In this document: piece after piece, positions 1 to 14,766 of the stretch | How positions within the stretch are numbered: the stretch's first letter is position 1 | Layout: every line of letters starts with the position of its first letter | Sequence record: NC_027402.1 | Reading direction: 5' to 3' (one strand) | DNA: 64,000 nt | Program-made: the position numbers and the translations under genes | Notes under the pieces: model-generated | Databases searched by the model: none | Seen by the model: the letters and a program-made list of their open reading frames with translations, nothing else | What the model was told of the DNA's origin: nothing

Positions 1-873
1 ATTGAAATCTACCGCAAGGAAGGTTGGAACGCAACAATCGACGTTTACAATCCAGGCACACCCCACGCAACTTTATCAGGCAACGCGGTAGAGTTCGTAG
101 ATAATATCGATACCCTGACGAAGAATACAACCTATCGTTATTGGGTAGCTGCTGTGAAGGACAGTGAACGACTTATCGGCAATCCGATTACGCAAGGATT
201 CTATCCGGACACCGGGCCGGGTCCGCAAACAATCCTGCGCGGTGACTGGGCTTCAGGTTATTTCGGTACAGTACCGAATACAGAGTTCTTTAATACTGCC
301 GAGTTAAAACTCATGTTAACTGCGCAGCAGGGAAACATGTTTGTCTACGACCCTCAGGAATGGCACAAGTTTATTTTCCGTGGGAGAATTGTCTTCTTCC
401 CAGCGACGATGCATTCGAAAACCAACTCGGTACAAATGGCGTATCAGTACGGTATGATGTACGGGACCGATGATGACGGAAGTATTGTTCCGCTGGGAGC
501 CACGGCGACTAAACAAGATTGTAAGGTCACGAAGGATGGTCGTACGTACCGTATCCGATTACCTTACGCAGTCCCGTACGACGCTGTTCTCTCAGGACAG
601 GATTACAACAACGGTGAATGGCGAAACACAATGGGCCGTTTGTATCCTGTCGGTGCACAGTTCGCAGCCCTCGGTCTTGGTGCGATTGACTCACTTGCAA
701 GACAAGGCGCGACTGCGCAGCCGAATGAGTCAGGTGCCGCTGTATTAGCTCCTTTGTGGAGCAACAACATATTCGCTTATGCGTATGGCACCGTGCCTAT
801 GGGGATTAGTAACACCGCAGGTGTCGGGAACTCGGCCACGATATTCTTTGCTTTTGAATTAGTCTTACCGTAA
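1..873 (+). CDS. Tail/baseplate-fibre paralog A1, 5' partial (FN3/Ig-like N-terminus + GPGP domain, phiKZ gp131-like family)
   Basis: Frame 1 is open from base 1 (IEIYRKEGW...YRYWVAAVKDSER) and aligns with A2/A3. Motifs DTGPGPQ..GDW..GYFG and WHKFIFRGRI. Confidence 0.75.
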   Translation: MEIYRKEGWNATIDVYNPGTPHATLSGNAVEFVDNIDTLTKNTTYRYWVAAVKDSERLIGNPITQGFYPDTGPGPQTILRGDWASGYFGTVPNTEFFNTAELKLMLTAQQGNMFVYDPQEWHKFIFRGRIVFFPATMHSKTNSVQMAYQYGMMYGTDDDGSIVPLGATATKQDCKVTKDGRTYRIRLPYAVPYDAVLSGQDYNNGEWRNTMGRLYPVGAQFAALGLGAIDSLARQGATAQPNESGAAVLAPLWSNNIFAYAYGTVPMGISNTAGVGNSATIFFAFELVLP

Positions 874-886
874 TGGAGTAAATACC

Positions 887-2383
887 ATGGGGTTGTATAC
901 AGAACCTTCAATGGAACTGCTCTGCCAACAAATTGTGCGTGACAATCCCGGTTTAGCAGGAAAAATCACTGCTGACTCCATTGGGGTCAGGGGTGTTCCT
1001 GTTGCGAAAAACGTTAACGGACGAAACACACAGATTACGTTGGTAGGAAAACCCGGTAAAGGATTTGCTGGGGAAATAACGGTATATTACGACCGGTTGA
1101 ATCTGGCCAGTCTGTTCAAGTCTGGCCCGAATACGGTGAGTATTCCACGTAGCGCACAAACCCATGCGGAAACGTTACCGGCGTTCAATGAATTGAACGG
1201 GTTGAACTTAACCGCGAGTGACATCACCAGTCCAAACGTTGCATTAATGAAATACGCTACGCCGGAAACTATAACTCTGACGGCGCACGCTAACTCCTTG
1301 TGTTATACCGGGTCATGCAAGATGACCTATGTTTACGAACCGATTGCGATGTATCCGAAGTCGGGTCCTGGGCCAAAAGGATTAATGGCTGGTAATGAGT
1401 TATACGGATTCTTTGGGCTGGTAAGCGCGGAAGAGTTATTCACATCTGATGAAATGGTGTATGCCCTCTATAACGGCACCAACTGGCCTAACCGCTACGC
1501 TATCAAGTGGCTCAAATTCTTTCTGAATGGGGCGGTAGTGTTTGTTCCGACCCGTGCGATTTGCAACGTTACCTGGGCAGACCTGTACAACAAGGGTGCA
1601 ATATTTGATTCCGGAGACGCAGGACCTCGCCCGAAGTCGACTTACACACCTGTCGATGTTGAACAGTTGAAATACATGGTAAAACGGGATGATGAAGGAA
1701 CGCATTATTTCAGAATGTCTATCCCGTATTACACCGAGAACGCCGCCGCGCCTGATTGGAGTAAACCGCCGTCAATCACCTCTATCCTGTCACTGACCAG
1801 CAAATTGGGGTCGGTGAACGTATATGGGGAATGGGGAACTCTTAGCACGACTGATGCTAACTTCCTGGATTACGTGTGGTTACGACACCAGTTCGGTGCC
1901 GACCAAGCGTATTACCAGTCTATCAGTGGGAGCTATCGTTCATACACCTACATTTACACCTCTTCTGGCTTTTGGCCAATCTTGGAGATGTTTGATGTTG
2001 CCAATGAACCTGTGCCGTTGATTGACGAAGGTGCAGAACTGACATGGGCACCGTCCGTGGTTACTCTGACGGACATCGACCAAAATGAATCGCTTCGTGT
2101 GGTGCCTATTACGGAAACCTCCGCTGCAGCGAATCCACGTCCGTTAGTTTTCAACACCGACAACACCGAAACTGCCACCCCTGCCTGGGTGCGGGAAACG
2201 TCATCAGACTCACCACGTCCTCTGCTTGCCACGACGGACAATGATGAACGTGCATATTCCGTCGCGGTAACAGGCATGGCTAGCGTTAAGATTAGACCGA
2301 TTATTCTCACGACTGACCAAATCGCCCAACCTTCAAAAATTACTCTGGGCGATACTAACGGTGAGTTGGATGGATTCCAATAA
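887..2383 (+). CDS. Virion structural paralog B1 (N-terminal YYDRLNL domain, GPGP domain, PRPL repeats, NGELDGF end)
   Basis: 498 aa ORF with GGAG SD; colinear with 4299-5741. Confidence 0.75.
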   Translation: MGLYTEPSMELLCQQIVRDNPGLAGKITADSIGVRGVPVAKNVNGRNTQITLVGKPGKGFAGEITVYYDRLNLASLFKSGPNTVSIPRSAQTHAETLPAFNELNGLNLTASDITSPNVALMKYATPETITLTAHANSLCYTGSCKMTYVYEPIAMYPKSGPGPKGLMAGNELYGFFGLVSAEELFTSDEMVYALYNGTNWPNRYAIKWLKFFLNGAVVFVPTRAICNVTWADLYNKGAIFDSGDAGPRPKSTYTPVDVEQLKYMVKRDDEGTHYFRMSIPYYTENAAAPDWSKPPSITSILSLTSKLGSVNVYGEWGTLSTTDANFLDYVWLRHQFGADQAYYQSISGSYRSYTYIYTSSGFWPILEMFDVANEPVPLIDEGAELTWAPSVVTLTDIDQNESLRVVPITETSAAANPRPLVFNTDNTETATPAWVRETSSDSPRPLLATTDNDERAYSVAVTGMASVKIRPIILTTDQIAQPSKITLGDTNGELDGFQ

Positions 2384-2395
2384 GAGGTAACGACA

Positions 2396-3385
2396 ATGGC
2401 TTTTACAATTCGTTGGACGAACAATAACCCTGGGGCTTCGACCGTGAAGCTGTACCGCGACACCAAACCTCTGGTGCGTACGGCATTACCTGAACCCCTG
2501 GCAACGTTCACTAACGGGGAAACTGAGTATACTGACCGAACAGCGATACTGGGGACAACGTATTACTACATGACCACTGTGACAGTGGGAAGCCGAACAC
2601 TGTTCAGTCCGCAGAAATCAATTCTGATTCAGAACCGTCGCGGTATCGGCATCGTGGCTCCACAGTACGGTGATGACCGCTTTGCGTATTACGGGTACGT
2701 GACGTACGGTGAATTACCTAGCGCGGGTGATTATCCGCCGGGGTTTGTGGCCCTTTCTGGATACGACCCAACTGTTAAGCCGGGCTTGATGAAGTTCCAG
2801 CTAGACGGTAAAATTCTGTATCTGTTTAGTGGTCTTCGTGCGAACGGCAACACGCTGTATAGCCGTGATGCGATTTATAACGCGGGTTTGCTGTACGGTG
2901 TGGCGGGACCTGGTCCGGAAGGCGGTCATGGCGATTTACCTGACGTTGACCAGGCTGGGGAGTTTACGTGGTTGGGTGACCGCTATCGGATGCGCCTGCT
3001 GCGCGGTTTAACACTCGACAGTGAAAGCCCGGTCATGACACTCGACGCACAGTGGAACGGTAAACTCCATGACGAGTCGCCGTATACTGCCGATAGCGAA
3101 TACAACCGACTCATCTATGGGATAAGTAGCTGGTTCCCAGAAAAGAAAAAAGTGATGTCCCTGATAAAGTGGTCGAACACCAGCATATTCGGAAGTGGAT
3201 CGCTGGTGGCAGGCCGTGGGGCGCATTGTCAGGAGTTTGACCCAGACAGTAAGTTGGGGCTGACGCGCGGATGGGCGGCGGCGGATTCCACTGATACCGT
3301 GGATAACCTCCAGCGTATACAACATGTCCCTGGTGCGACCGTGGGCGGTATTTGGATTCCAGTAATCGAGCTTATCGAGGATTAA
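2396..3385 (+). CDS. Virion structural paralog C1 (FN3-like N-terminus + gp131-like domain)
   Basis: 329 aa; MAFTIRW start, YNAGLLYG and YRMRLLRGL shared with 5752-6750. Confidence 0.75.
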   Translation: MAFTIRWTNNNPGASTVKLYRDTKPLVRTALPEPLATFTNGETEYTDRTAILGTTYYYMTTVTVGSRTLFSPQKSILIQNRRGIGIVAPQYGDDRFAYYGYVTYGELPSAGDYPPGFVALSGYDPTVKPGLMKFQLDGKILYLFSGLRANGNTLYSRDAIYNAGLLYGVAGPGPEGGHGDLPDVDQAGEFTWLGDRYRMRLLRGLTLDSESPVMTLDAQWNGKLHDESPYTADSEYNRLIYGISSWFPEKKKVMSLIKWSNTSIFGSGSLVAGRGAHCQEFDPDSKLGLTRGWAAADSTDTVDNLQRIQHVPGATVGGIWIPVIELIED

Positions 3386-3387
3386 TC

Positions 3388-4287
3388 ATGCCTATTACAT
3401 TAAACTTTGCACAACGGAAGCCACAGGCGCTCGATAACATTGAAATCTATCGCAAGACGCCGGGCAACGCCACCATTGATGTTAATGCACCGGGAACGCC
3501 TCTGGCAACCCTTCCGGGTGACGCTACATCGTACGAAGACAACGCTGTGGAAAACAACACCACTTACCGTTATTGGATAGCTGCGGTTAAAGACGGTGAG
3601 CGTGTCTTCAACACCCCTACCGCCCAAGGGTTCTTTTTAGACACCGGGCCTGGCCCCCAGAAGCTGTTATACGGCGACTGGCACGCTGGATACTTTGGAA
3701 CAGTAACGCCAGCAGAGTTATTCACTAACACGGAACTGAACAGCCTCGTGGTGAATATGTTCAGTTCCGCCGTTGGTGCCTGGCATAAGTTCATTTACAA
3801 AAACCGTATTCTGTTTATGTCCGATAACTCGATAATATACGCTAGCCCGCAGTTCATTTATAACCAGGGGCTGATGTACGGCCAGGATGGCAACGGATAT
3901 GTACCGGGCTGGGCTACTGCACGTAACCAACGCCGCACGGTGACGAAAAACGGTTACGAATACGTGGTGCGCTTGCCGTATTTGTTCGACTATAAATTCT
4001 GGACGTCTTACGTTGGAAGCGGTAACACTGAGTTGTATCTCGACGGTGAGTGGTTTAACACCTTCGCGCGCCTGTACAACTACAATGGGCAGTTTCCGCG
4101 CTTTGACGACATTCCGGTCGGTCCAATCGATTCGGTTACTGCCCAACAATCTGCATTCTTTGCGGCTATGAATAACACGTCCAGTCAGTGGTACAACCGT
4201 CCACCTTACCCTGAGTCGCCGTCGTGGAGTAACTACGGTACCACTACAATACGCTCCATTGCGGTACTTGAACTTGTTCTGCCTTAA
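3388..4287 (+). CDS. Tail/baseplate-fibre paralog A2
   Basis: Start moved to MPITLNF (GAGG SD, matches A3 MSIILNW). DTGPGPQKL..GDWHAGYFG motif; ends ELVLP like A1. Confidence 0.75.
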   Translation: MPITLNFAQRKPQALDNIEIYRKTPGNATIDVNAPGTPLATLPGDATSYEDNAVENNTTYRYWIAAVKDGERVFNTPTAQGFFLDTGPGPQKLLYGDWHAGYFGTVTPAELFTNTELNSLVVNMFSSAVGAWHKFIYKNRILFMSDNSIIYASPQFIYNQGLMYGQDGNGYVPGWATARNQRRTVTKNGYEYVVRLPYLFDYKFWTSYVGSGNTELYLDGEWFNTFARLYNYNGQFPRFDDIPVGPIDSVTAQQSAFFAAMNNTSSQWYNRPPYPESPSWSNYGTTTIRSIAVLELVLP

Positions 4288-4298
4288 CAGGAGACTTC

Positions 4299-5741
4299 AT
4301 GGGATTGTATAGCGCACCCGAACTGGAATTACTCTGCCAACAAGTCGTAAGGGATAACCCTGAACTCGCAGGAAGAATCAGCGCTGATTCGATTGGGGTG
4401 AGGGGTATTCCTGCCGAGACCACTAAGAATGGTCGTAACACGGTAATTACGTTGGTAGGAAAACCCGGTAAAGGTTTCTCTGGGGAGTGCACGGTTTATT
4501 ACGACCGTTTAACATTATCAGATCTATTTAAAATAGCTCCGCGCATCTACGTACCACAAACGGCCAAGACCGTGCGGGATCTTCTCCCAGCTCTACGCGA
4601 TTTATACGGTGTTTGGTTATCTGATAGCAGTGTACAGTCGGTAGACGCGCCTATCAAATCGCTGGCAACGCCAACACGTATTAATTTAACCGCGTATAAT
4701 AGCGTATGCTATCGCGGCTATATCCCGGTCGATTATTTGAATGAAGCCGTGGGGTACTATCCAGATTCTGGGCCAGGCAATAAATATTTGTTGGCAGGGG
4801 ACAGCACAAACGGATACTTCGGCCACGTTTCTCAGCAAGAGTTATTTACCTTTGCTGAACTAAACAACCTAATTCGTCCTGATGTTGCCCCAACGAAAAT
4901 GACTTTCGAGTGGTTGAAATTTTTCAAGGATGGTAAGATTGTTTATCTACCGACTACCGGAACGTTAACAGCAACCTGGACGGCCCTTTATCAAGCGGGT
5001 GCCATTTTCGGTACAGGTGACGCTGGTCCTTATCCAGACGGTATCGAACCTGTTGACCAGGCTTTGATTGTCACGAAAACTGAGAATAACAAGACGCATT
5101 ATTACCGCGTCTCCGTTCCGGTTAGCCCTGATTTATCAAAGGCCACACCGTTGTGGCTTATTTCACAACTCGGTGATGGTTCTACGGGCGGCGACTGGGC
5201 AAATGACACCACGTTAACCAGAACCACCGTCTTCTTCACGCAACAACTGTTAACCGGGGGTAACCCTGTTAAAGTACAACGTTGCAATATGCGTGGTGGC
5301 TCAGTTGAATGGGTAACCCTTACAGATACCACTTACTGGTGGCCTGTTTTAGAGGAAATCAATAAGGACGACATCGTCTTACCTTTAGCTGATGTGGAAG
5401 GGGATGTTGTGTGGCGCGTTAGGGTTATTCCTAATGTACCATCACCACAACCTGATAGCATTCGCCCTCTTGCAGTCGAGGTTGCGACAACAGATGCGCC
5501 GAGACCTCTAGCAACAACTGCGGAACAGGTGGAAGAACCTATCAGCCCGATTGTGGTGGGTGAACCAAACGTCGATACTGCGCTGCCGTTATCGACAGTG
5601 TCGAACAGCGTAGGTACAGTTAGGCCGATGGTTGTACTTGAACCACGCGTCGACGCACCGCGTCCACTACCGCCTACTCAGGCAGAACCTCCACTTAAAA
5701 CAGATTTAGCAACCGCGAACGGTGAGTTGAACGGCTTCTAA
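4299..5741 (+). CDS. Virion structural paralog B2
   Basis: 480 aa; MGLYS..ELLCQQ..RDNP start, YYDRL, PDSGPG, PRPL repeats, ANGELNGF end. Confidence 0.75.
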   Translation: MGLYSAPELELLCQQVVRDNPELAGRISADSIGVRGIPAETTKNGRNTVITLVGKPGKGFSGECTVYYDRLTLSDLFKIAPRIYVPQTAKTVRDLLPALRDLYGVWLSDSSVQSVDAPIKSLATPTRINLTAYNSVCYRGYIPVDYLNEAVGYYPDSGPGNKYLLAGDSTNGYFGHVSQQELFTFAELNNLIRPDVAPTKMTFEWLKFFKDGKIVYLPTTGTLTATWTALYQAGAIFGTGDAGPYPDGIEPVDQALIVTKTENNKTHYYRVSVPVSPDLSKATPLWLISQLGDGSTGGDWANDTTLTRTTVFFTQQLLTGGNPVKVQRCNMRGGSVEWVTLTDTTYWWPVLEEINKDDIVLPLADVEGDVVWRVRVIPNVPSPQPDSIRPLAVEVATTDAPRPLATTAEQVEEPISPIVVGEPNVDTALPLSTVSNSVGTVRPMVVLEPRVDAPRPLPPTQAEPPLKTDLATANGELNGF

Positions 5742-5751
5742 GGAGTAACAG

Positions 5752-6750
5752 ATGGCTTTCACACTACGCTGGAAAAATGAAAATCCGGCAGGTTCAATTG
5801 TTAACATTTATCGGGGCACGGCTAAAATAAATACAGCCGCATTACCAGCCCCTATTGCAACTTTAAGTAATGGCGAAACGGAATGGACGGACGAAACCGT
5901 TATTCTTAACACCCGTTACTGGTATCTTTTAACAGTAACTGTTAACGGTCGTACCGTAGGTAGTCCACAAAAATCCTTTGTCATTAAAAACCGTCGTGGT
6001 GTGGGTGGCGTCGACCAGATTAACTATTCCGATACTGACGACTTGGCGTTTCTGGGGCAGTTGCCGTTCGAAGAACAGATGACCTATGACGCGTTGCCTG
6101 CAGGCTTTCGTGCATTAACAGGGATATCGGGCACGGGCACGCTAATCATGAACAAGTTTTATCGTCATGGTAAAGTTTACTACATGATGAACAACGGCGG
6201 ACGATTTAACTCTACACTTTACTCGTGGAATGACATTTATAACGCGGGGCTTGTGTACGGCGTTGATGGATTTGGCCCTGATAACGGACGTGGTGATTTG
6301 GCGGGTGTTGACCAGAGTGGGTTGTTTGAATGGCAAGGCGACACCTATCGGATGCGCCTGCTGCGCGGTTTAACCGACGGGGACGAACCGACAGTAATGA
6401 CGTTGGATGAATCGTTACGAAACGCAGACCATGATGACTTGGAATATGGTCGCTGCGAATATAACGACTTTGTTTATCCGTTCGCGGATTGCATCCCTAA
6501 CAAACAAATGCTCCCCAACTGGACTAATACCAGTCCGGCGTACATTTATGGGAGCGGTAGCGCTTACCAAGGCAAAGGTTTCTTGTGCCAGGAACGTGAT
6601 CCTGAATCGGGATTAGTTCTGGTTCGTGGGTCTGCGCCTATCGATTCAAGCACAACCAATACGTCGAAACGTAACCTCTCTCAAGTTACGTTAATTGACA
6701 GTGCTGAGAAGGTCGGTTTGTACGCATTCGTTATCGAGTTAGTGGAGTAA
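5752..6750 (+). CDS. Virion structural paralog C2
   Basis: 332 aa; colinear with C1. Confidence 0.75.
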   Translation: MAFTLRWKNENPAGSIVNIYRGTAKINTAALPAPIATLSNGETEWTDETVILNTRYWYLLTVTVNGRTVGSPQKSFVIKNRRGVGGVDQINYSDTDDLAFLGQLPFEEQMTYDALPAGFRALTGISGTGTLIMNKFYRHGKVYYMMNNGGRFNSTLYSWNDIYNAGLVYGVDGFGPDNGRGDLAGVDQSGLFEWQGDTYRMRLLRGLTDGDEPTVMTLDESLRNADHDDLEYGRCEYNDFVYPFADCIPNKQMLPNWTNTSPAYIYGSGSAYQGKGFLCQERDPESGLVLVRGSAPIDSSTTNTSKRNLSQVTLIDSAEKVGLYAFVIELVE

Positions 6751-6753
6751 AAC

Positions 6754-7656
6754 ATGTCGATTATCTTAAACTGGAAACAACAGCCAGGCCAGACTTTAGA
6801 TTCCATTGAAATCTATCGTTACGACAACCCTAGACAAAGTGTTAACCCAGTAGCACCGGGGGAACCTATTGTAACACTACCAGGTAACACAACGACGTAC
6901 GAGGACAAGACCACCGAAGCGTATAAAACGTATCAATATCGCATCGTGGCGGTAAAGGGCACTGAAAAGGTTATGGGGCTGCCGATTGTACAGGGCGACT
7001 TTCCAATGACAGGACCCGGCCCACAGGAACTTATTCGTGGCGACTGGCATCGTGGCTACTTTGGCACACTGACAAACAAAGAATTTATTCTTAACCATGC
7101 CGAGCTGAATGGTTTAATTGGCTTTAATGCCTGGAACCAAGCTCCAACATTGTTCCATAAATTCGTTTTCAAAGGACGCATTCTGTTCATTCCTGACACG
7201 GTGACCCGTTTAGGGACGACGTGGAACGAACAATACCAGCAAGGTCTGGCCTGGGGAACAGATGACTACGGTTTCCCGCCACGGGGCGTCGCTACCACTA
7301 ACCAGCGTCGGACATTTAATAAAGACGGTTACGAGTATGTGGTACGTTTGCCTCGACTCGGAGACTACAGTTATGGGCACAGCACCTACCTAAGCAGCGG
7401 TGGTTATTTTCAAGACGGCGAGTGGCACAACACGTTCGCAAGCTTGTTCCGCTACGCGGGCCTCGTAAGACGTTTTGGCGACTTACCGAGGCGCTCCGGC
7501 GGTAGTCCAACCGATTCAAGCGCAACATTGTTTGCCAACGGTTATGACAACGCCACCCCATGGTACTATCGCAGCAACTCACCAGACACACCATCGTACA
7601 CCTCTTCGACCAATAGCGCGTCGGTAGTCCACGTTATCGAACTGGTTCTTAGCTAA
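6754..7656 (+). CDS. Tail/baseplate-fibre paralog A3
   Basis: 300 aa; TGPGPQEL..GDWHRGYFG; ends ELVLS. Confidence 0.75.
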   Translation: MSIILNWKQQPGQTLDSIEIYRYDNPRQSVNPVAPGEPIVTLPGNTTTYEDKTTEAYKTYQYRIVAVKGTEKVMGLPIVQGDFPMTGPGPQELIRGDWHRGYFGTLTNKEFILNHAELNGLIGFNAWNQAPTLFHKFVFKGRILFIPDTVTRLGTTWNEQYQQGLAWGTDDYGFPPRGVATTNQRRTFNKDGYEYVVRLPRLGDYSYGHSTYLSSGGYFQDGEWHNTFASLFRYAGLVRRFGDLPRRSGGSPTDSSATLFANGYDNATPWYYRSNSPDTPSYTSSTNSASVVHVIELVLS

Positions 7657-7667
7657 CAGGAGCTAAT

Positions 7668-7760
7668 ATGGGGTTTTACTCATCCACTGCACTTGAGCTG
7701 TTGTGTCGGCTCATTCAGCGGGATAATCCCCAACACGCAGGTCGAATCAGCTGGAGTTAA
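7668..7760 (+). pseudogene. Truncated relic of a third B-type gene (30 aa)
   Basis: AGGAG SD, then MGFYSSTALELLCRLIQRDNPQHAGRISWS*, which aligns with the B2 start MGLYSAPELELLCQQVVRDNPELAGRIS. Confidence 0.8.
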
Positions 7761-7789
7761 AGGGATAGCGTACTTCACCATAACAGCTA

Positions 7790-7822
7790 AAAATAGGCCC
7801 TGAAGGGCCTATTTTCTTTTTT
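7790..7822 (+). terminator. Intrinsic terminator
   Basis: AAAATAGGCCC-TGAA-GGGCCTATTTT followed by a T tract. Confidence 0.8.
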
Positions 7823-7834
7823 TAGGACGTTGCA

Positions 7835-9154
7835 ATGATCAACTATAACAAACCTGTCATGCAGCTGGTTTGGGATCAGATTAATCGTGATAACCCGCAG
7901 CTCAAGAAACCACTCAACGCAACCAACGTGGCGTTATTACAAGGTCCTTTAACCAATGCCTTGCGCGATGGCCGCAACAGCCGTATAGTGGTAAACGGAT
8001 TACAGGGTGGCGGTTACAGCGGTAAGATGGACATCTACTACGACCGCTTAAACCTTTCGCAGTATTTTAAAGGCGTCAGCGTACCGGTTAAAGTACCTTA
8101 TCGGGCGACGTCCTACCGCGACATCATCGACCGGATTTCCGCAGCTTGTGGGCTGGTGCTTACTGCTGACGATTTAACGTATCCTGACAGCCAGTTTGCA
8201 ATGATCACTGTGGCAACGGGCGATCGGACGGTGGCGATTAAATCGGATAACCCCGCATTCACGGGTCACATTCCTATTAGCTTTATTCGTGAAGAGCCCA
8301 GCTTTGCCGACTTGTACCACACCACCGAAACCGGAGCTTGGGAACCCATGGATGTTTACAGCACGGTCTATCGACTCGACTGGAGCATGTACACCCAACA
8401 GATAATCAATATCCCGATGGGTACCCCGCTGCGACTAAACAGTAACTCGTACATGACCCAGTTCATCGCGGCGCTGTCGGCATGGTCGGGCATCCCGTTC
8501 ACTATCGGTAATGCTGCTACTGATAACCCGTATGACCTCTATGGGTATGTCGCTACACGCAATAACAACCCAGGCTTAGACCCTGATATGCGTGGGGAGT
8601 ACAATTACTGCGTGAAGTTGACGCCACCTGAGGATATGGGTAATCTCCGCCGTCCGTTCTTCTTGCACTTTGGTCCGAAAAATAACGTGGCCTATTTGGC
8701 GCAGGAAAAGGACGTCGAACGTTATGCGCGTTACATGAGTTTCCGGGAAACCAGCCCAAATTCGATGAGCGTCACGTTGTATCAAAACGAGTACGTGTTG
8801 ACTCGGGCAGAATCGCCTGAAACTGCGGATGATTTAACGGGTTCCCCGTATGGCACTCGATACTGTACCGGGAGTATTCGACGGCTGATGCAACACGCGT
8901 TTCCGACCGAAGAGATGTTCCAAGAAAGTATTGCTAACCGACGTCGGGTACTGTACCACACTGCTTACACCACCACGACATCAGCTATTACTTACCAGGG
9001 ACTATACCGTAACGGATACCAATCCAAACAAATGACGAGCCTCTACTCGAATTACTGTAACTATTTCATCTATTACGACCCAAGCAAAGGCGGCTATATG
9101 GTCTACAGTCCATATAGCAAAACCGCCCCGGTCCCTTGGTATCCAGCGCTATAG
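7835..9154 (+). CDS. Virion structural/tail protein with N-terminal YYDRLNL domain
   Basis: 439 aa; RDNP...RN..I...G..G.G.SG....YYDRLNL shared with B genes; C-terminal YYD..PY.K.AP.PW shared with the next gene. Confidence 0.65.
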   Translation: MINYNKPVMQLVWDQINRDNPQLKKPLNATNVALLQGPLTNALRDGRNSRIVVNGLQGGGYSGKMDIYYDRLNLSQYFKGVSVPVKVPYRATSYRDIIDRISAACGLVLTADDLTYPDSQFAMITVATGDRTVAIKSDNPAFTGHIPISFIREEPSFADLYHTTETGAWEPMDVYSTVYRLDWSMYTQQIINIPMGTPLRLNSNSYMTQFIAALSAWSGIPFTIGNAATDNPYDLYGYVATRNNNPGLDPDMRGEYNYCVKLTPPEDMGNLRRPFFLHFGPKNNVAYLAQEKDVERYARYMSFRETSPNSMSVTLYQNEYVLTRAESPETADDLTGSPYGTRYCTGSIRRLMQHAFPTEEMFQESIANRRRVLYHTAYTTTTSAITYQGLYRNGYQSKQMTSLYSNYCNYFIYYDPSKGGYMVYSPYSKTAPVPWYPAL

Positions 9155-9168
9155 ACTAAGGTGTCACC

Positions 9169-11346
9169 ATGTCATACACTCCCGATTTAGTGGCGACCGT
9201 GATTCGGTCGCTCAACCGTAAAAACGCGGTCGCCAAAGCAGTAGACCCCGCTAACGTACGCCTGGTGTCCGTGGCGCATCGTGACGAAAAAACCCTAGAC
9301 GTCACACTGACAGGGGGTCCGGGGTATTCAAGTTACGGTCAAATTACGGCCCAAGTGACGAAGCAAAATATTGCTGATTATTTCGCTAAGGTTAAGTTGG
9401 ATGCCATTCCCACTTGTGCGTCCATCCACGAACTGTTGCCACATTTAGACACTCTACTAGGGATTACCTTTTTAACCGACGACTTTGAAGACCTGCCCAT
9501 CACTTGGACAAACAATGCTGCGCGCATCACGTTCCAGGCGAAACAGACAAGTCTTATCTGGTACGGCAGCCAAACGCTAGATGTGATAAACGGTGACGTG
9601 GATATCAACACCGTCTACACTGTTACCAACATCATTCTCACGCTAAAGGCTGCGAATAAACAGCAGTGGATTAACTTCTACTCTAATGCAGCCAAACGGA
9701 TCGTGGATCTTGATAAAGTCGATGTCAGTGCCCCGATGTCCCCGGAGGATATAGGCCAAACCTCTGCGTATAACAGCGTCGTAGCTTTGACCGCTAGACC
9801 GGGGAGCGGGATGTTTGGAACGAAGTATGTGTTCTTCTCACGTAACAAACTCGAGACATATTCAGGCAAAACCACATACGTCCCGGATGATTTCACCGGT
9901 AGCCTGCACGATGCTCTGGCCATCGAGACACTCGGCATTCGGAGCGTTTTTGATGTAAACGAAATTGCTCCTGTAGAGAGCCTGGCAGGCGAGTGGCCGA
10001 GACAAGTGCAATTGGCACCCGTAGAGGGTTCGTACAAAGTCATGGGCAGCGCCACGTTGAATGTGGCACGCTATCAAGATAACGAGCAAACCCTTAACCT
10101 GAACTACACAACTACGTCGCAACTTTCGGACAGCTACTGGGCCACAACGTTGACCAACCACGCGGCGTGCGGGCGTTTGTTTGTTAACGTGACCGTAGAT
10201 GCGGGGGCTTTCGTTTATCGCGACAGCAACCTGAAACCGACGTTCGTTATCGACGAATTGCCGCAAATTGGCGAGGTGGTTTGGAACTTCGTTAACCGGG
10301 GAACCATTCTTGGTCGTGGTGGTTCGGGTGTGGTCTACTCTATGCCTGCGAACACATCAGCGGACGGAGCTGACGCAATCCACATTAGCGATACCTTCCG
10401 TGGCAAAGTCACCATCGAAAACTACGGCACCATCGCCGGTGGTGGGGGTGGGGGTGACTACTATGCGTTTAGCACCACCAAGATCGGTGGAGCTGGTGGT
10501 GCGCCTCTCGGGCCAGGCGCGGCGGTGCCCAGCGGCACCAATAACCGTAACGGCTTAGCTGGGTCCCGTGACAAAGGCGGTGCTACCCAGTTAGTCGTCG
10601 CACAATTTACCGGCTACCAGAGTCGCTACTATGGCGGTCCGGGTGGGGATTGGGGCCAGCCGGGACGATATACAGCGTTCGAGCAATGGAACACCCCGGC
10701 TACCGGCTCGCCAGTCTATGTCTACGGTCGTGAAGACGGGATGTCATGGACTCGCCCTGGGATGGCAGGCGAAGCCGTCGGTGGGAATAAAAGTATCGTC
10801 AACTGGGTATCCGTCGGAACGGTGAAACCGAATGTTACCGACGAGTACCAAGAATTCCTCGACTACCTCGCAGTTTTAGATGCCAACCGACTGGCCAGTG
10901 CGGATGGGATAGATAAAGTCACCGACCCAACCAAGCCTGTAGTTGTGGAGTTCTTAGGTACGATTATTTCAGGTACGCTGTTCAAAAAGCAAAACATACC
11001 CGGCGGTTTGGTGGGAACACCATACGGTGATGCTGTAGCCAATTTACCGAGCACCACATTGTTTGGTATCATGGCACACAGTGTATCGGAGTTTGATATT
11101 GTGCACGATATTTGGCGTTACAACCGTGCGGTGATGTTCACGCTAAAACCCGCGCCTACCGGGACGATTAACCTCGCTGTGGAACGCAACCGGGTGAAAT
11201 CGGCTACCAGTAGTGCACCGGTGGAGAAGTTCTATGTCGATCGCTTCGTGTATTACGATGCCTACCTCGGTAAGATGATGGAATGTAATCCGTATACCAA
11301 ATCCGCCCCTAAACCGTGGGTGCGGCCAAAGATATCGTTATCATAA
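9169..11346 (+). CDS. Tail-associated receptor-binding protein with internal T-even gp38-like Gly-rich adhesin domain
   Basis: 725 aa; GRGGSG, AIH, NYGTIAGGGGGG, GGAGGAPLG, GGPGGDWG, G.AGEAV.G, NW..VGT follow the order of gp38 glycine-rich motifs. Confidence 0.7.
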   Translation: MSYTPDLVATVIRSLNRKNAVAKAVDPANVRLVSVAHRDEKTLDVTLTGGPGYSSYGQITAQVTKQNIADYFAKVKLDAIPTCASIHELLPHLDTLLGITFLTDDFEDLPITWTNNAARITFQAKQTSLIWYGSQTLDVINGDVDINTVYTVTNIILTLKAANKQQWINFYSNAAKRIVDLDKVDVSAPMSPEDIGQTSAYNSVVALTARPGSGMFGTKYVFFSRNKLETYSGKTTYVPDDFTGSLHDALAIETLGIRSVFDVNEIAPVESLAGEWPRQVQLAPVEGSYKVMGSATLNVARYQDNEQTLNLNYTTTSQLSDSYWATTLTNHAACGRLFVNVTVDAGAFVYRDSNLKPTFVIDELPQIGEVVWNFVNRGTILGRGGSGVVYSMPANTSADGADAIHISDTFRGKVTIENYGTIAGGGGGGDYYAFSTTKIGGAGGAPLGPGAAVPSGTNNRNGLAGSRDKGGATQLVVAQFTGYQSRYYGGPGGDWGQPGRYTAFEQWNTPATGSPVYVYGREDGMSWTRPGMAGEAVGGNKSIVNWVSVGTVKPNVTDEYQEFLDYLAVLDANRLASADGIDKVTDPTKPVVVEFLGTIISGTLFKKQNIPGGLVGTPYGDAVANLPSTTLFGIMAHSVSEFDIVHDIWRYNRAVMFTLKPAPTGTINLAVERNRVKSATSSAPVEKFYVDRFVYYDAYLGKMMECNPYTKSAPKPWVRPKISLS

Positions 11347-11390
11347 TTTAACGAGGAACTTGACGGGGTTAAAGCCTGAGAATAACCCAT

Positions 11391-11425
11391 GCCCTCTTCC
11401 CCACGGGGAAGAGGCTTTCTTTTTA
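11391..11425 (+). terminator. Intrinsic terminator
   Basis: CCTCTTCCC-CACG-GGGAAGAGG followed by CTTTCTTTTT. Confidence 0.8.
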
Positions 11426-14238: not shown

Positions 14239-14766
14239 ATGGCAGTCATCTCTGCAAAAGACCAACTCGTCGCGCTGTTTAATGCTGCAAACAGCGGACT
14301 GTCTAGTCCGTTAACTGCTGCTGACGTTACATTCGGCGCTGTTGCTGACTATTCACCAGCTGATTCCGGAGACACACGCAACTCCAAACTTACCATCACC
14401 GCCACCGAGGAATCCGCTAACTTTACTGGCGAGAAAGAGCTGCATTATACCCGCCTCAATTCATTGAACATCATCGGTGCGAAAGCAGTGACCGCTGACC
14501 AGGCAGAATGGGATACCGATGAAGAAGTGCTTGCTTTTGTCAACGCAGATCTAATTGCTGCCGGTAAAACGGAAGATGCGTTTGCATTGTCTGAACTCAC
14601 CATTACACGCGAGGACGGCAGCAGTGGTGAGAAAATCATCACTGTTAAGGTGAAAGAAGGCCACATCAAATACCAACCTGCCAGCCTTGCGGTTTATACT
14701 GTAACACAGCCAATCGTTAAAACTGACCTGAGCACCACCAACGGTGAACTGGACGGATTCGTTTAA
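14239..14766 (+). CDS. Small virion structural protein (YTRLN domain, TNGELDGF end)
   Basis: 175 aa acidic protein sharing N- and C-terminal motifs with the B genes; AAGGA SD. Confidence 0.7.
   Translation: MAVISAKDQLVALFNAANSGLSSPLTAADVTFGAVADYSPADSGDTRNSKLTITATEESANFTGEKELHYTRLNSLNIIGAKAVTADQAEWDTDEEVLAFVNADLIAAGKTEDAFALSELTITREDGSSGEKIITVKVKEGHIKYQPASLAVYTVTQPIVKTDLSTTNGELDGFV

Follow-up and report, generated by a model that had tools for sequence, protein, structure and literature searches.

The question raised by this locus is what a receptor-binding domain familiar from the tail fibre tips of T-even phages is doing in the middle of a virion protein of a giant phage. The window analysed here, a stretch of 64,000 nucleotides to which all positions below refer unless otherwise stated, is 100% identical to the genome of Salmonella phage SPN3US (JN641803/NC_027402), with base 1 of the window at base 124001 of the record. 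The protein is gp155 (SPN3US_0155), whose open reading frame is 100% identical to positions 133169-135346 of JN641803/NC_027402 and whose gene sits between gp154 and the endolysin gene. GenBank annotates SPN3US_0155 as 'hypothetical protein', in one record (SPFM19) the orthologue is called 'Phage tail fiber adhesin Gp38', and precomputed Pfam calls, already in databases, name both of its domains, GP38 and DUF7941. Our literature search found no paper treating this gp38/DUF7941 fusion in gp155. The protein combines two known kinds, a gp38 adhesin and a DUF7941 filament protein, and we propose that it is probably a low-copy structural virion protein of the DUF7941 family (the 'paralog family B' of SPN3US) that carries a gp38-type receptor-binding domain in cis, as a candidate adhesin.

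9169..11346, plus strand: gp155 (SPN3US_0155) coding sequence, a virion protein of 725 amino acids (aa) and 78.3 kDa (open reading frame list and translation).
10084..10839 (residues 306-557), plus strand: complete gp38-type polyglycine-II adhesin domain (Pfam, fold and family profile).
10285..10827 (residues 373-553), plus strand: Pfam GP38 envelope (PF05268).

The domain is identified first of all by profiles, with a match well outside what chance would give. The GP38 family (PF05268) matches residues 373-553 of gp155 with an E-value of 7.1e-18 (65.7 bits, the curated cut-off being 25), reaching 70.1 bits in a six-frame search of the SPN3US genome, and PHROG 2056, described as 'tail fiber protein; host specificity', matches residues 370-553 (E = 2.5e-19). 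Genome-wide profile searches revealed no second GP38 domain in the 240-kb SPN3US genome. A phmmer search of the PDB with gp155 returned only the gp38 proteins of phages S16 (6f45_D, E = 0.005) and PP01 (9v85, E = 0.007), and a family profile, which itself contains rows from stand-alone gp38s, matches the 6f45 and 9v85 entries at E = 1e-31. A preliminary description of this DNA had listed seven glycine-rich motifs in gp38 order within 10170-10830, and all seven are present in that order (residues 382-551).

10312..10329 (residues 382-387), plus strand: motif GRGGSG, kept in the fused and stand-alone gp38 sets.
Residues 404-406, plus strand: motif AIH, in the translation.
10414..10455 (residues 416-429), plus strand: motif IENYGTIAGGGGGG, its six-glycine run invariant in 19/19 aligned sequences.
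10486..10512 (residues 440-448), plus strand: motif GGAGGAPLG, kept in the fused and stand-alone sets.
10636..10668 (residues 490-500), plus strand: motif GGPGGDWGQPG, kept in the fused and stand-alone sets.
10756..10821, plus strand: last glycine motif PGMAGEAVGG (residues 530-539) and closing strand NWVSVGT (residues 545-551, nucleotides 10801-10821), kept in both sets.

The fixed order of these motifs is maintained across 13 fused and 12 stand-alone gp38 sequences, and gp155 adds two long lineage-specific loop inserts (residues ~476-486 and ~506-527) that are absent from the stand-alone proteins. The predicted fold agrees with the profiles. An AlphaFold2 model of gp155, built with a 19-row alignment of 13 fused relatives (gp155 included) and 6 stand-alone gp38s, has a mean predicted local distance difference test score (pLDDT) of 85.9; a single-sequence run reached 34.7 and was unusable. 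Searched against the PDB with Foldseek, the model matched PP01 gp38 (E = 1.3e-10), S16 gp38 (E = 1.8e-8) and then chain 9xqd_0 (E = 4e-5), from the outer peripheral baseplate of phiKZ, with nothing else of significance. VIA-align superposed it on S16 gp38 (6f45_D) with Z = 23.2 and a root mean square deviation (rmsd) of 3.6 A over 214 residues, and on PP01 gp38 (9v85_A) with Z = 22.4 and 2.7 A over 210 residues, model residues 306-557. By hidden Markov model and by overall alignment of the predicted fold, residues 306-557 are thus a true, full gp38-type polyglycine-II sandwich domain. Both the profile match and the structural match on which the preliminary description had staked its proposal were found, and the domain does lie mid-protein in the 725-residue chain, its span by fold (10084-10839) being slightly larger than first described.

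The T-even gp38 adhesins (T2, T6, PP01 and S16; 6F45 chain D, 9V85) belong to the same PF05268 family, with the same order of glycine-rich motifs separating variable loops, and resemble gp155 with fold Z-scores of 22-23 and 26-27% identity over ~210 residues. In sequence the likeness is visible to profiles only. A tblastn search of 50,697 phage records with the gp38 domain of gp155 found no T-even gp38 at an E-value threshold of 10, because the low-complexity filter masks the glycine runs, and the likeness therefore rests on profiles and fold. The two settings differ markedly. T-even gp38 is a stand-alone protein of ~260 aa encoded after gene 37 (in the genes examined, between gene 37 and the holin gene) and located at the tip of the tail fibre, whereas gp155 has 725 aa, holds its gp38 domain between DUF7941 modules and a C-terminal domain, and has been published on tailless heads. 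Moreover, the gp37-binding domain Gp38_N (PF21721) had no match in gp155 or in any fused relative scanned with Pfam; a stand-alone relative (P0028) has it, with an E-value of 2e-13.

The N-terminal part of gp155 would provide the connection to the virion.

9169..9630 (residues 1-154), plus strand: first DUF7941 N-terminal module (PF25613, E = 1.9e-23, residues 11-154).
9685..10116 (residues ~173-316), plus strand: second DUF7941 N-terminal-like module (PF25613 on excised residues 155-372; jackhmmer).

The first module matches PF25613 (DUF7941) with 83.8 bits against a cut-off of 27. The second emerges when residues 155-372 are excised and compared with the same profile (E = 1.7e-6, 28.2 bits, cut-off 27), and a jackhmmer search seeded with the first module recovers residues 173-316 with an i-E-value of 1.1e-27. 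In the predicted structure, residues 1-140 align with phiKZ gp127 (Z = 9.9, rmsd 3.7 A, 130 residues), the chain 9xqd_0 that is named PHIKZ127 in the outer peripheral baseplate structure 9XQD, and a profile of the N-terminal modules of the SPN3US lineage has PHIKZ127 as its top PDB match (E = 0.005). The N-terminus is hence of phiKZ type, as the preliminary description held; that it is an attachment region of the tail is unproven, and the tail location so implied is contradicted by the proteomics considered below, which assign gp155 to tailless heads. By jackhmmer, the DUF7941 N-module is found in 16 SPN3US proteins (gp155 and 15 others) that correspond to paralog family B as published, a set of ~20 virion proteins for which the defining group reported no function (PMC5694885). 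Since gp155 has no family entry in the published SPN3US table (PMC5694885), its membership of family B is a small new annotation.

A recent preprint on phage Goslar (10.64898/2026.04.21.720040, 2026) defines DUF7941 as specific to chimalliviruses, predicts that the proteins oligomerise head to tail, and shows purified gp22 as filaments. It describes three Goslar members with carbohydrate-binding, glycoside hydrolase or leucine-rich repeat (LRR) domains and, from the position of phiKZ gp127 in the baseplate, proposes a universal baseplate-anchored 'fibre cloud' for host recognition, with mention of neither gp38 nor SPN3US (10.64898/2026.04.21.720040). The chimallivirus DUF7941 proteins (Goslar gp22/gp23 and gp86/gp92/gp161; phiKZ gp126/gp127) have the same N-module as gp155 by hidden Markov model and fold, are virion-associated and share its modular plan, in which a DUF7941 module is followed by a putative host-recognition domain. 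The points of difference are that a gp38 accessory domain is unreported in the Goslar preprint, that gp155 has two tandem N-modules, and that it has no detectable linker or C-terminal part of the family.

Published proteomics places gp155 in the virion and associates it with the head. Ali et al. (2017) detected it when they analysed purified virions (28 unique peptides, 60% coverage; PMC5694885 Supp. Table 1), and its presence in a tailless mutant led them to label it 'Head' (PMC5694885). In a later data set (PMC10052503 Table S2, 2023), wild-type particles yielded 626 peptide-spectrum matches (PSMs) for gp155 and tailless 255(am107) heads yielded 398. The normalised ratio is 0.89, compared with 0.004-0.013 for the tail proteins gp167-170 and 1.39 for the major capsid protein and portal. 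With PSMs per kDa scaled to either the portal (12 copies) or the major capsid protein (1560 copies), we estimate ~8 to 44 copies of gp155 per virion. These data also bear on the alternative that gp155 belongs to the tail, where its DUF7941 module would lie at the outer peripheral baseplate like phiKZ gp127 and self-assembled DUF7941 filaments, tangled or co-purified with tailless heads, would account for the head assignment. The match of the N-terminal fold and profile to phiKZ gp127, modelled in the outer peripheral baseplate (9XQD), and the universal baseplate anchoring proposed for Goslar both speak for such a location, as does the calculated amount of gp155 per capsid in tailless heads, ~2/3 of wild type (0.89 vs 1.39), or about one third lower relative to capsid protein. 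In the very same experiment, however, true tail proteins drop to 0.4-7% overall (PMC10052503 Table S2) while gp155 holds 89%, and two independent tailless mutants lead to the same head assignment, with all family B members behaving alike. On balance, a tail location appears rather unlikely.

In the same data set (PMC10052503 Table S2), tailless heads retain all SPN3US DUF7941 proteins at their full level. The SPN3US proteomics thus puts the whole DUF7941 family on heads and conflicts with the baseplate anchoring proposed in the Goslar preprint. As regards gp155, the proteomics identifies a head fraction, which would include neck-borne fibres, and the phiKZ structure identifies a homologous module on the baseplate.

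In the reading that we favour, with gp155 as a virion-borne candidate adhesin, one or both N-terminal DUF7941 modules would join gp155 to the DUF7941 filament system of the virion or to its anchor, probably with the involvement of gp154. The polyglycine-II sandwich (residues 306-557) would then show its variable loops to the host surface and act as an adhesin for first contact, and the covalent link to the DUF7941 modules would stand in for the gp37-binding N-domain of gp38. It is conceivable that gp155 forms the end of a chain rather than an internal link, because it has neither the DUF7941 linker and C-terminal part nor the NGELDGF tail of its relatives. We infer that gp155 would be located externally, incorporated into filaments and active as an adhesin. 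Host-contact structures borne on the capsid or neck have precedents in the Hoc protein and whiskers of T4 and in the head filament of the flagellotropic Caulobacter phage phiCbK. If gp155 does lie outside the capsid, these may offer an analogy, and an analogy only, as non-tail appendages making a first reversible contact; we found no relation in sequence or fold between gp155 and T4 Hoc, the T4 whiskers or the phiCbK head filament. SPN3US is reported to use flagella as its receptor in a passage of PMC11428620 that cites the genome announcement. A tentative extension is that of a flagellum-dependent jumbo phage whose flexible DUF7941 filaments, attached to the head or neck and not to the tail, would bear the gp38-type adhesin, so that a capsid-borne fibre cloud would make the first capture of the host. 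If this were true, the 20 members of family B, for which there has been no explanation since 2017, would make up an external host-recognition apparatus anchored unlike that of the Goslar/phiKZ baseplate model.

The behaviour of the loops speaks for the candidate-adhesin reading at one evolutionary scale and against it at another. Between genera, the four segments separating the glycine motifs are 15-23% identical and carry insertions and deletions, as opposed to 33-50% identity for the gp38 scaffold and 20-46% for the rest of the protein. In these alignments, the conserved motifs and hypervariable segments follow the T-even pattern. The comparison of loop variability among relatives suggested in the preliminary description hence shows such variability between genera and no extra loop variation within Seoulvirus.

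Several observations weigh against gp155 as a filament-borne adhesin. Within Seoulvirus there is no enrichment of variable sites in the loops (9/101 loop positions vs 17/151 in the scaffold), and phages with Salmonella, E. coli or Proteus as their recorded host have gp38 domains of 92-100% identity. Given this low divergence and lack of loop enrichment, gp155 is not evidently a host-range determinant, and the domain does not track host genus. A further observation is that gp155 has no match to the linker and C-terminal stretch of DUF7941 (profile positions ~170-276), the Pfam match ending at position 166; in Goslar gp22 this part mediates head-to-tail docking (preprint 10.64898/2026.04.21.720040). 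The C-terminal part of gp155 was considered as a DUF7941 C-terminal docking domain and dropped, the Pfam scan of its C-terminal 171 residues giving no DUF7941 match even at an E-value of 10. Another concerns the end of the gene.

11344..11379, plus strand: TAA stop (11344-11346), in-frame FNEELDGVKA (remnant, 11347-11376) and TGA (sequence).
Window 2339-2383, 5700-5741 and 14722-14766, and genome 122886-122930: shared NGEL(D/N)GF tails of gp145, gp148, gp151 and gp160.

Relatives at 78-82% identity, as well as more distant ones, read through the position of the stop to a tail that ends in NGELDGF (P0005, P0006, P0014, P0020 and P0022 end in this way), and the SPN3US DUF7941 proteins gp145, gp148, gp151 and gp160 end in K-x-x-L-x-x-x-NGEL(D/N)GF. 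By this comparison, FNEELDGVKA is the remnant of a conserved family tail, with two further changes at conserved sites, and SPN3US gp155 has lost its NGELDGF tail by a nonsense change. The filament system may use the NGEL(D/N)GF tail as a docking peptide. In the Seoulvirus Escherichia phages EC001 and Lh1B, gp155 ends three codons before that of SPN3US, at codon 723.

The loss of the C-terminal tail through a stop codon, together with within-genus variation that is low and not focused on the loops, would also suit the view that the gp38 domain is a decayed structural relic without a binding role, a spacer within a decoration protein. We consider this very improbable: the glycine motifs are all intact, the model has a pLDDT of 85.9 and a Z of 23 to solved adhesins, and every diverged relative retains the domain, which has been duplicated together with its partner gene. 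A last observation against the adhesin reading is that the Thomas laboratory saw abundant members of family B as candidates for internal 'Head ejection?' proteins. Taken with the presence of gp155 in tailless heads and the large amount of internal protein held in SPN3US heads, that label favours an internal head protein, packaged and ejected with the DNA, whose gp38-like fold would act within the host envelope or within the capsid. The family's accessory domains (gp38 in SPN3US; carbohydrate-binding, glycoside hydrolase and LRR in Goslar) are typical, however, of external host recognition, and phiKZ gp127 has been seen outside the capsid, on the baseplate. An internal role thus seems improbable to us, and the candidate-adhesin reading of gp155 is the one we retain.

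The remainder of gp155 links it to its upstream neighbour.

10840..11343 (residues 558-725), plus strand: C-terminal domain of gp155, within the SPN3US genome common only to gp154.
7835..9154, plus strand: gp154, the partner gene, a DUF7941 protein with the same C-terminal domain as gp155.
7790..7815, plus strand: terminator-like hairpin upstream of gp154, with an 11-pair stem and a T run.
11393..11414, plus strand: terminator-like hairpin downstream of gp155, with a 9-pair stem, 6 GC pairs and a T run.

That the C-terminal region is common to the neighbouring gene, as first described, is borne out by BLASTP (gp155 614-717 against gp154 334-435, E = 6e-7), by PHROG 6409, which matches both proteins, and by jackhmmer, in which gp154 is the sole other SPN3US carrier of the domain. 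A Pfam scan of the C-terminal part gave no match and an ESM Atlas search with the domain returned nothing. The closest fold to residues ~570-693 is the LCCL domain 1jbi (Z = 8.8, rmsd 2.6 A, 99/100 residues), a lead only, given a tool background of Z = 7-8. The partner protein, gp154, matches DUF7941 in Pfam (E = 1.6e-26) and PHROG 1037 (E = 1.7e-66), and its spectral abundance in virions is similar to that of gp155 (SC/M of 0.90 and 0.70, respectively; PMC5694885 Supp. Table 1). The two genes form a unit with strong terminator-like hairpins at both ends, and the pair is syntenic in Cronobacter phage CR5. A 237-kb jumbo-phage contig from IMG/VR carries two tandem gp154-gp155 cassettes (L015:1203-8172), with two different gp38-bearing proteins that are 38% and 43% identical to gp155.

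The region around the pair has features of its own. Window positions 1-9154 contain a repeating unit composed of a ~300-aa protein ending in ELVLP/ELVLS (gp147, gp150, gp153) followed by a DUF7941 protein (gp148, gp151, gp154); units one and two each close with a ~330-aa protein (gp149, gp152), and gp155 comes after gp154. Pfam has no match for either the ~300-aa type (gp147, gp150, gp153) or the ~330-aa type (gp149, gp152). On the other side, the longest open reading frame of the endolysin gene starts at 11389, ahead of the terminator hairpin at 11393-11414 and running through it, and the annotated start at 11425, beyond the hairpin, is more plausible.

The preliminary description had interpreted the embedded domain as the horizontal capture of a host-range module, and it is this part of it that our comparative analysis does not sustain. 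An exhaustive phmmer search of 1.84 billion representatives with the excised gp38 domain found only 13 proteins at E <1e-3. Short fragments of the same gene aside, all but one of these have 700-755 aa, with the domain at ~residues 340-560, the exception being a stand-alone gp38 of 282 aa. All the full-length relatives scanned with Pfam carry both DUF7941, in two stretches, and GP38, and the fused architecture of gp155 is seen in ~13 deeply diverged jumbo-phage proteins. Among annotated phages, gp155 is present in Seoulvirus (94-100% identity) and in Cronobacter phage CR5 and Erwinia phage Phobos (~39-40%). When the excised domain and the stand-alone P0028 were used as queries in word-index protein searches, nearly all matches were fragments of the same gene, and related-locus searches with full-length and domain alignments found two loci each, their search patterns being lineage-specific. 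In eleven Seoulvirus records (LR535901, LR535903-LR535908, LR535911-LR535913 and LR535917; phages SPFM1, 5-10, 12, 14, 15 and 20), the alignment breaks the gp155 orthologue into 5 to 33 pieces, and the annotated proteins are shorter or split, which looks like the result of sequencing or assembly frameshifts and not of biology.

Identity to gp155 is even over its four parts, both in close and in middle-distance relatives, which argues against a recent domain swap. In an unrooted maximum likelihood tree of the gp38 domain, comprising the 13 fused sequences and 12 stand-alone ones (from Straboviridae, one Ounavirinae record and metagenomic sequences), a single branch with support of 94/89 (not starred) splits the fused from the stand-alone proteins, and long branches lie within the fused group. 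Three IMG/VR loci (L022-L024) were left out, as they encode T4-type chaperone gp38s (166-175 aa), which lack the adhesin domain. The tree being unrooted, neither donor nor direction is shown. A recent capture from T-even phages was rejected on the grounds of the even identities across domains and of a fused clade that is monophyletic and deep. Insofar as can be read from these sequences, the data fit one old fusion event. The Ounavirinae record, Listeria phage LPML1, encodes a stand-alone gp38-type protein of 255 aa after a long fibre gene (L030:1483-2250); this puts a gp38-type adhesin outside the Straboviridae, and the Listeria host label is odd for Ounavirinae.

The polyglycine-II adhesin is thus not confined to the stand-alone fibre tips of T-even phages, but can work, or at least persist, inside a larger protein. 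The main value of gp155 lies in the handle it provides on what a large and unexplained family of giant-phage proteins does and where it is located. That one member of family B holds a confidently recognised receptor-binding domain provides independent evidence for a host-facing family, and a host-facing family B agrees with the 'DUF7941 fibre cloud' proposed in 2026. The amber-mutant genetic system of SPN3US makes the adhesin idea directly testable.

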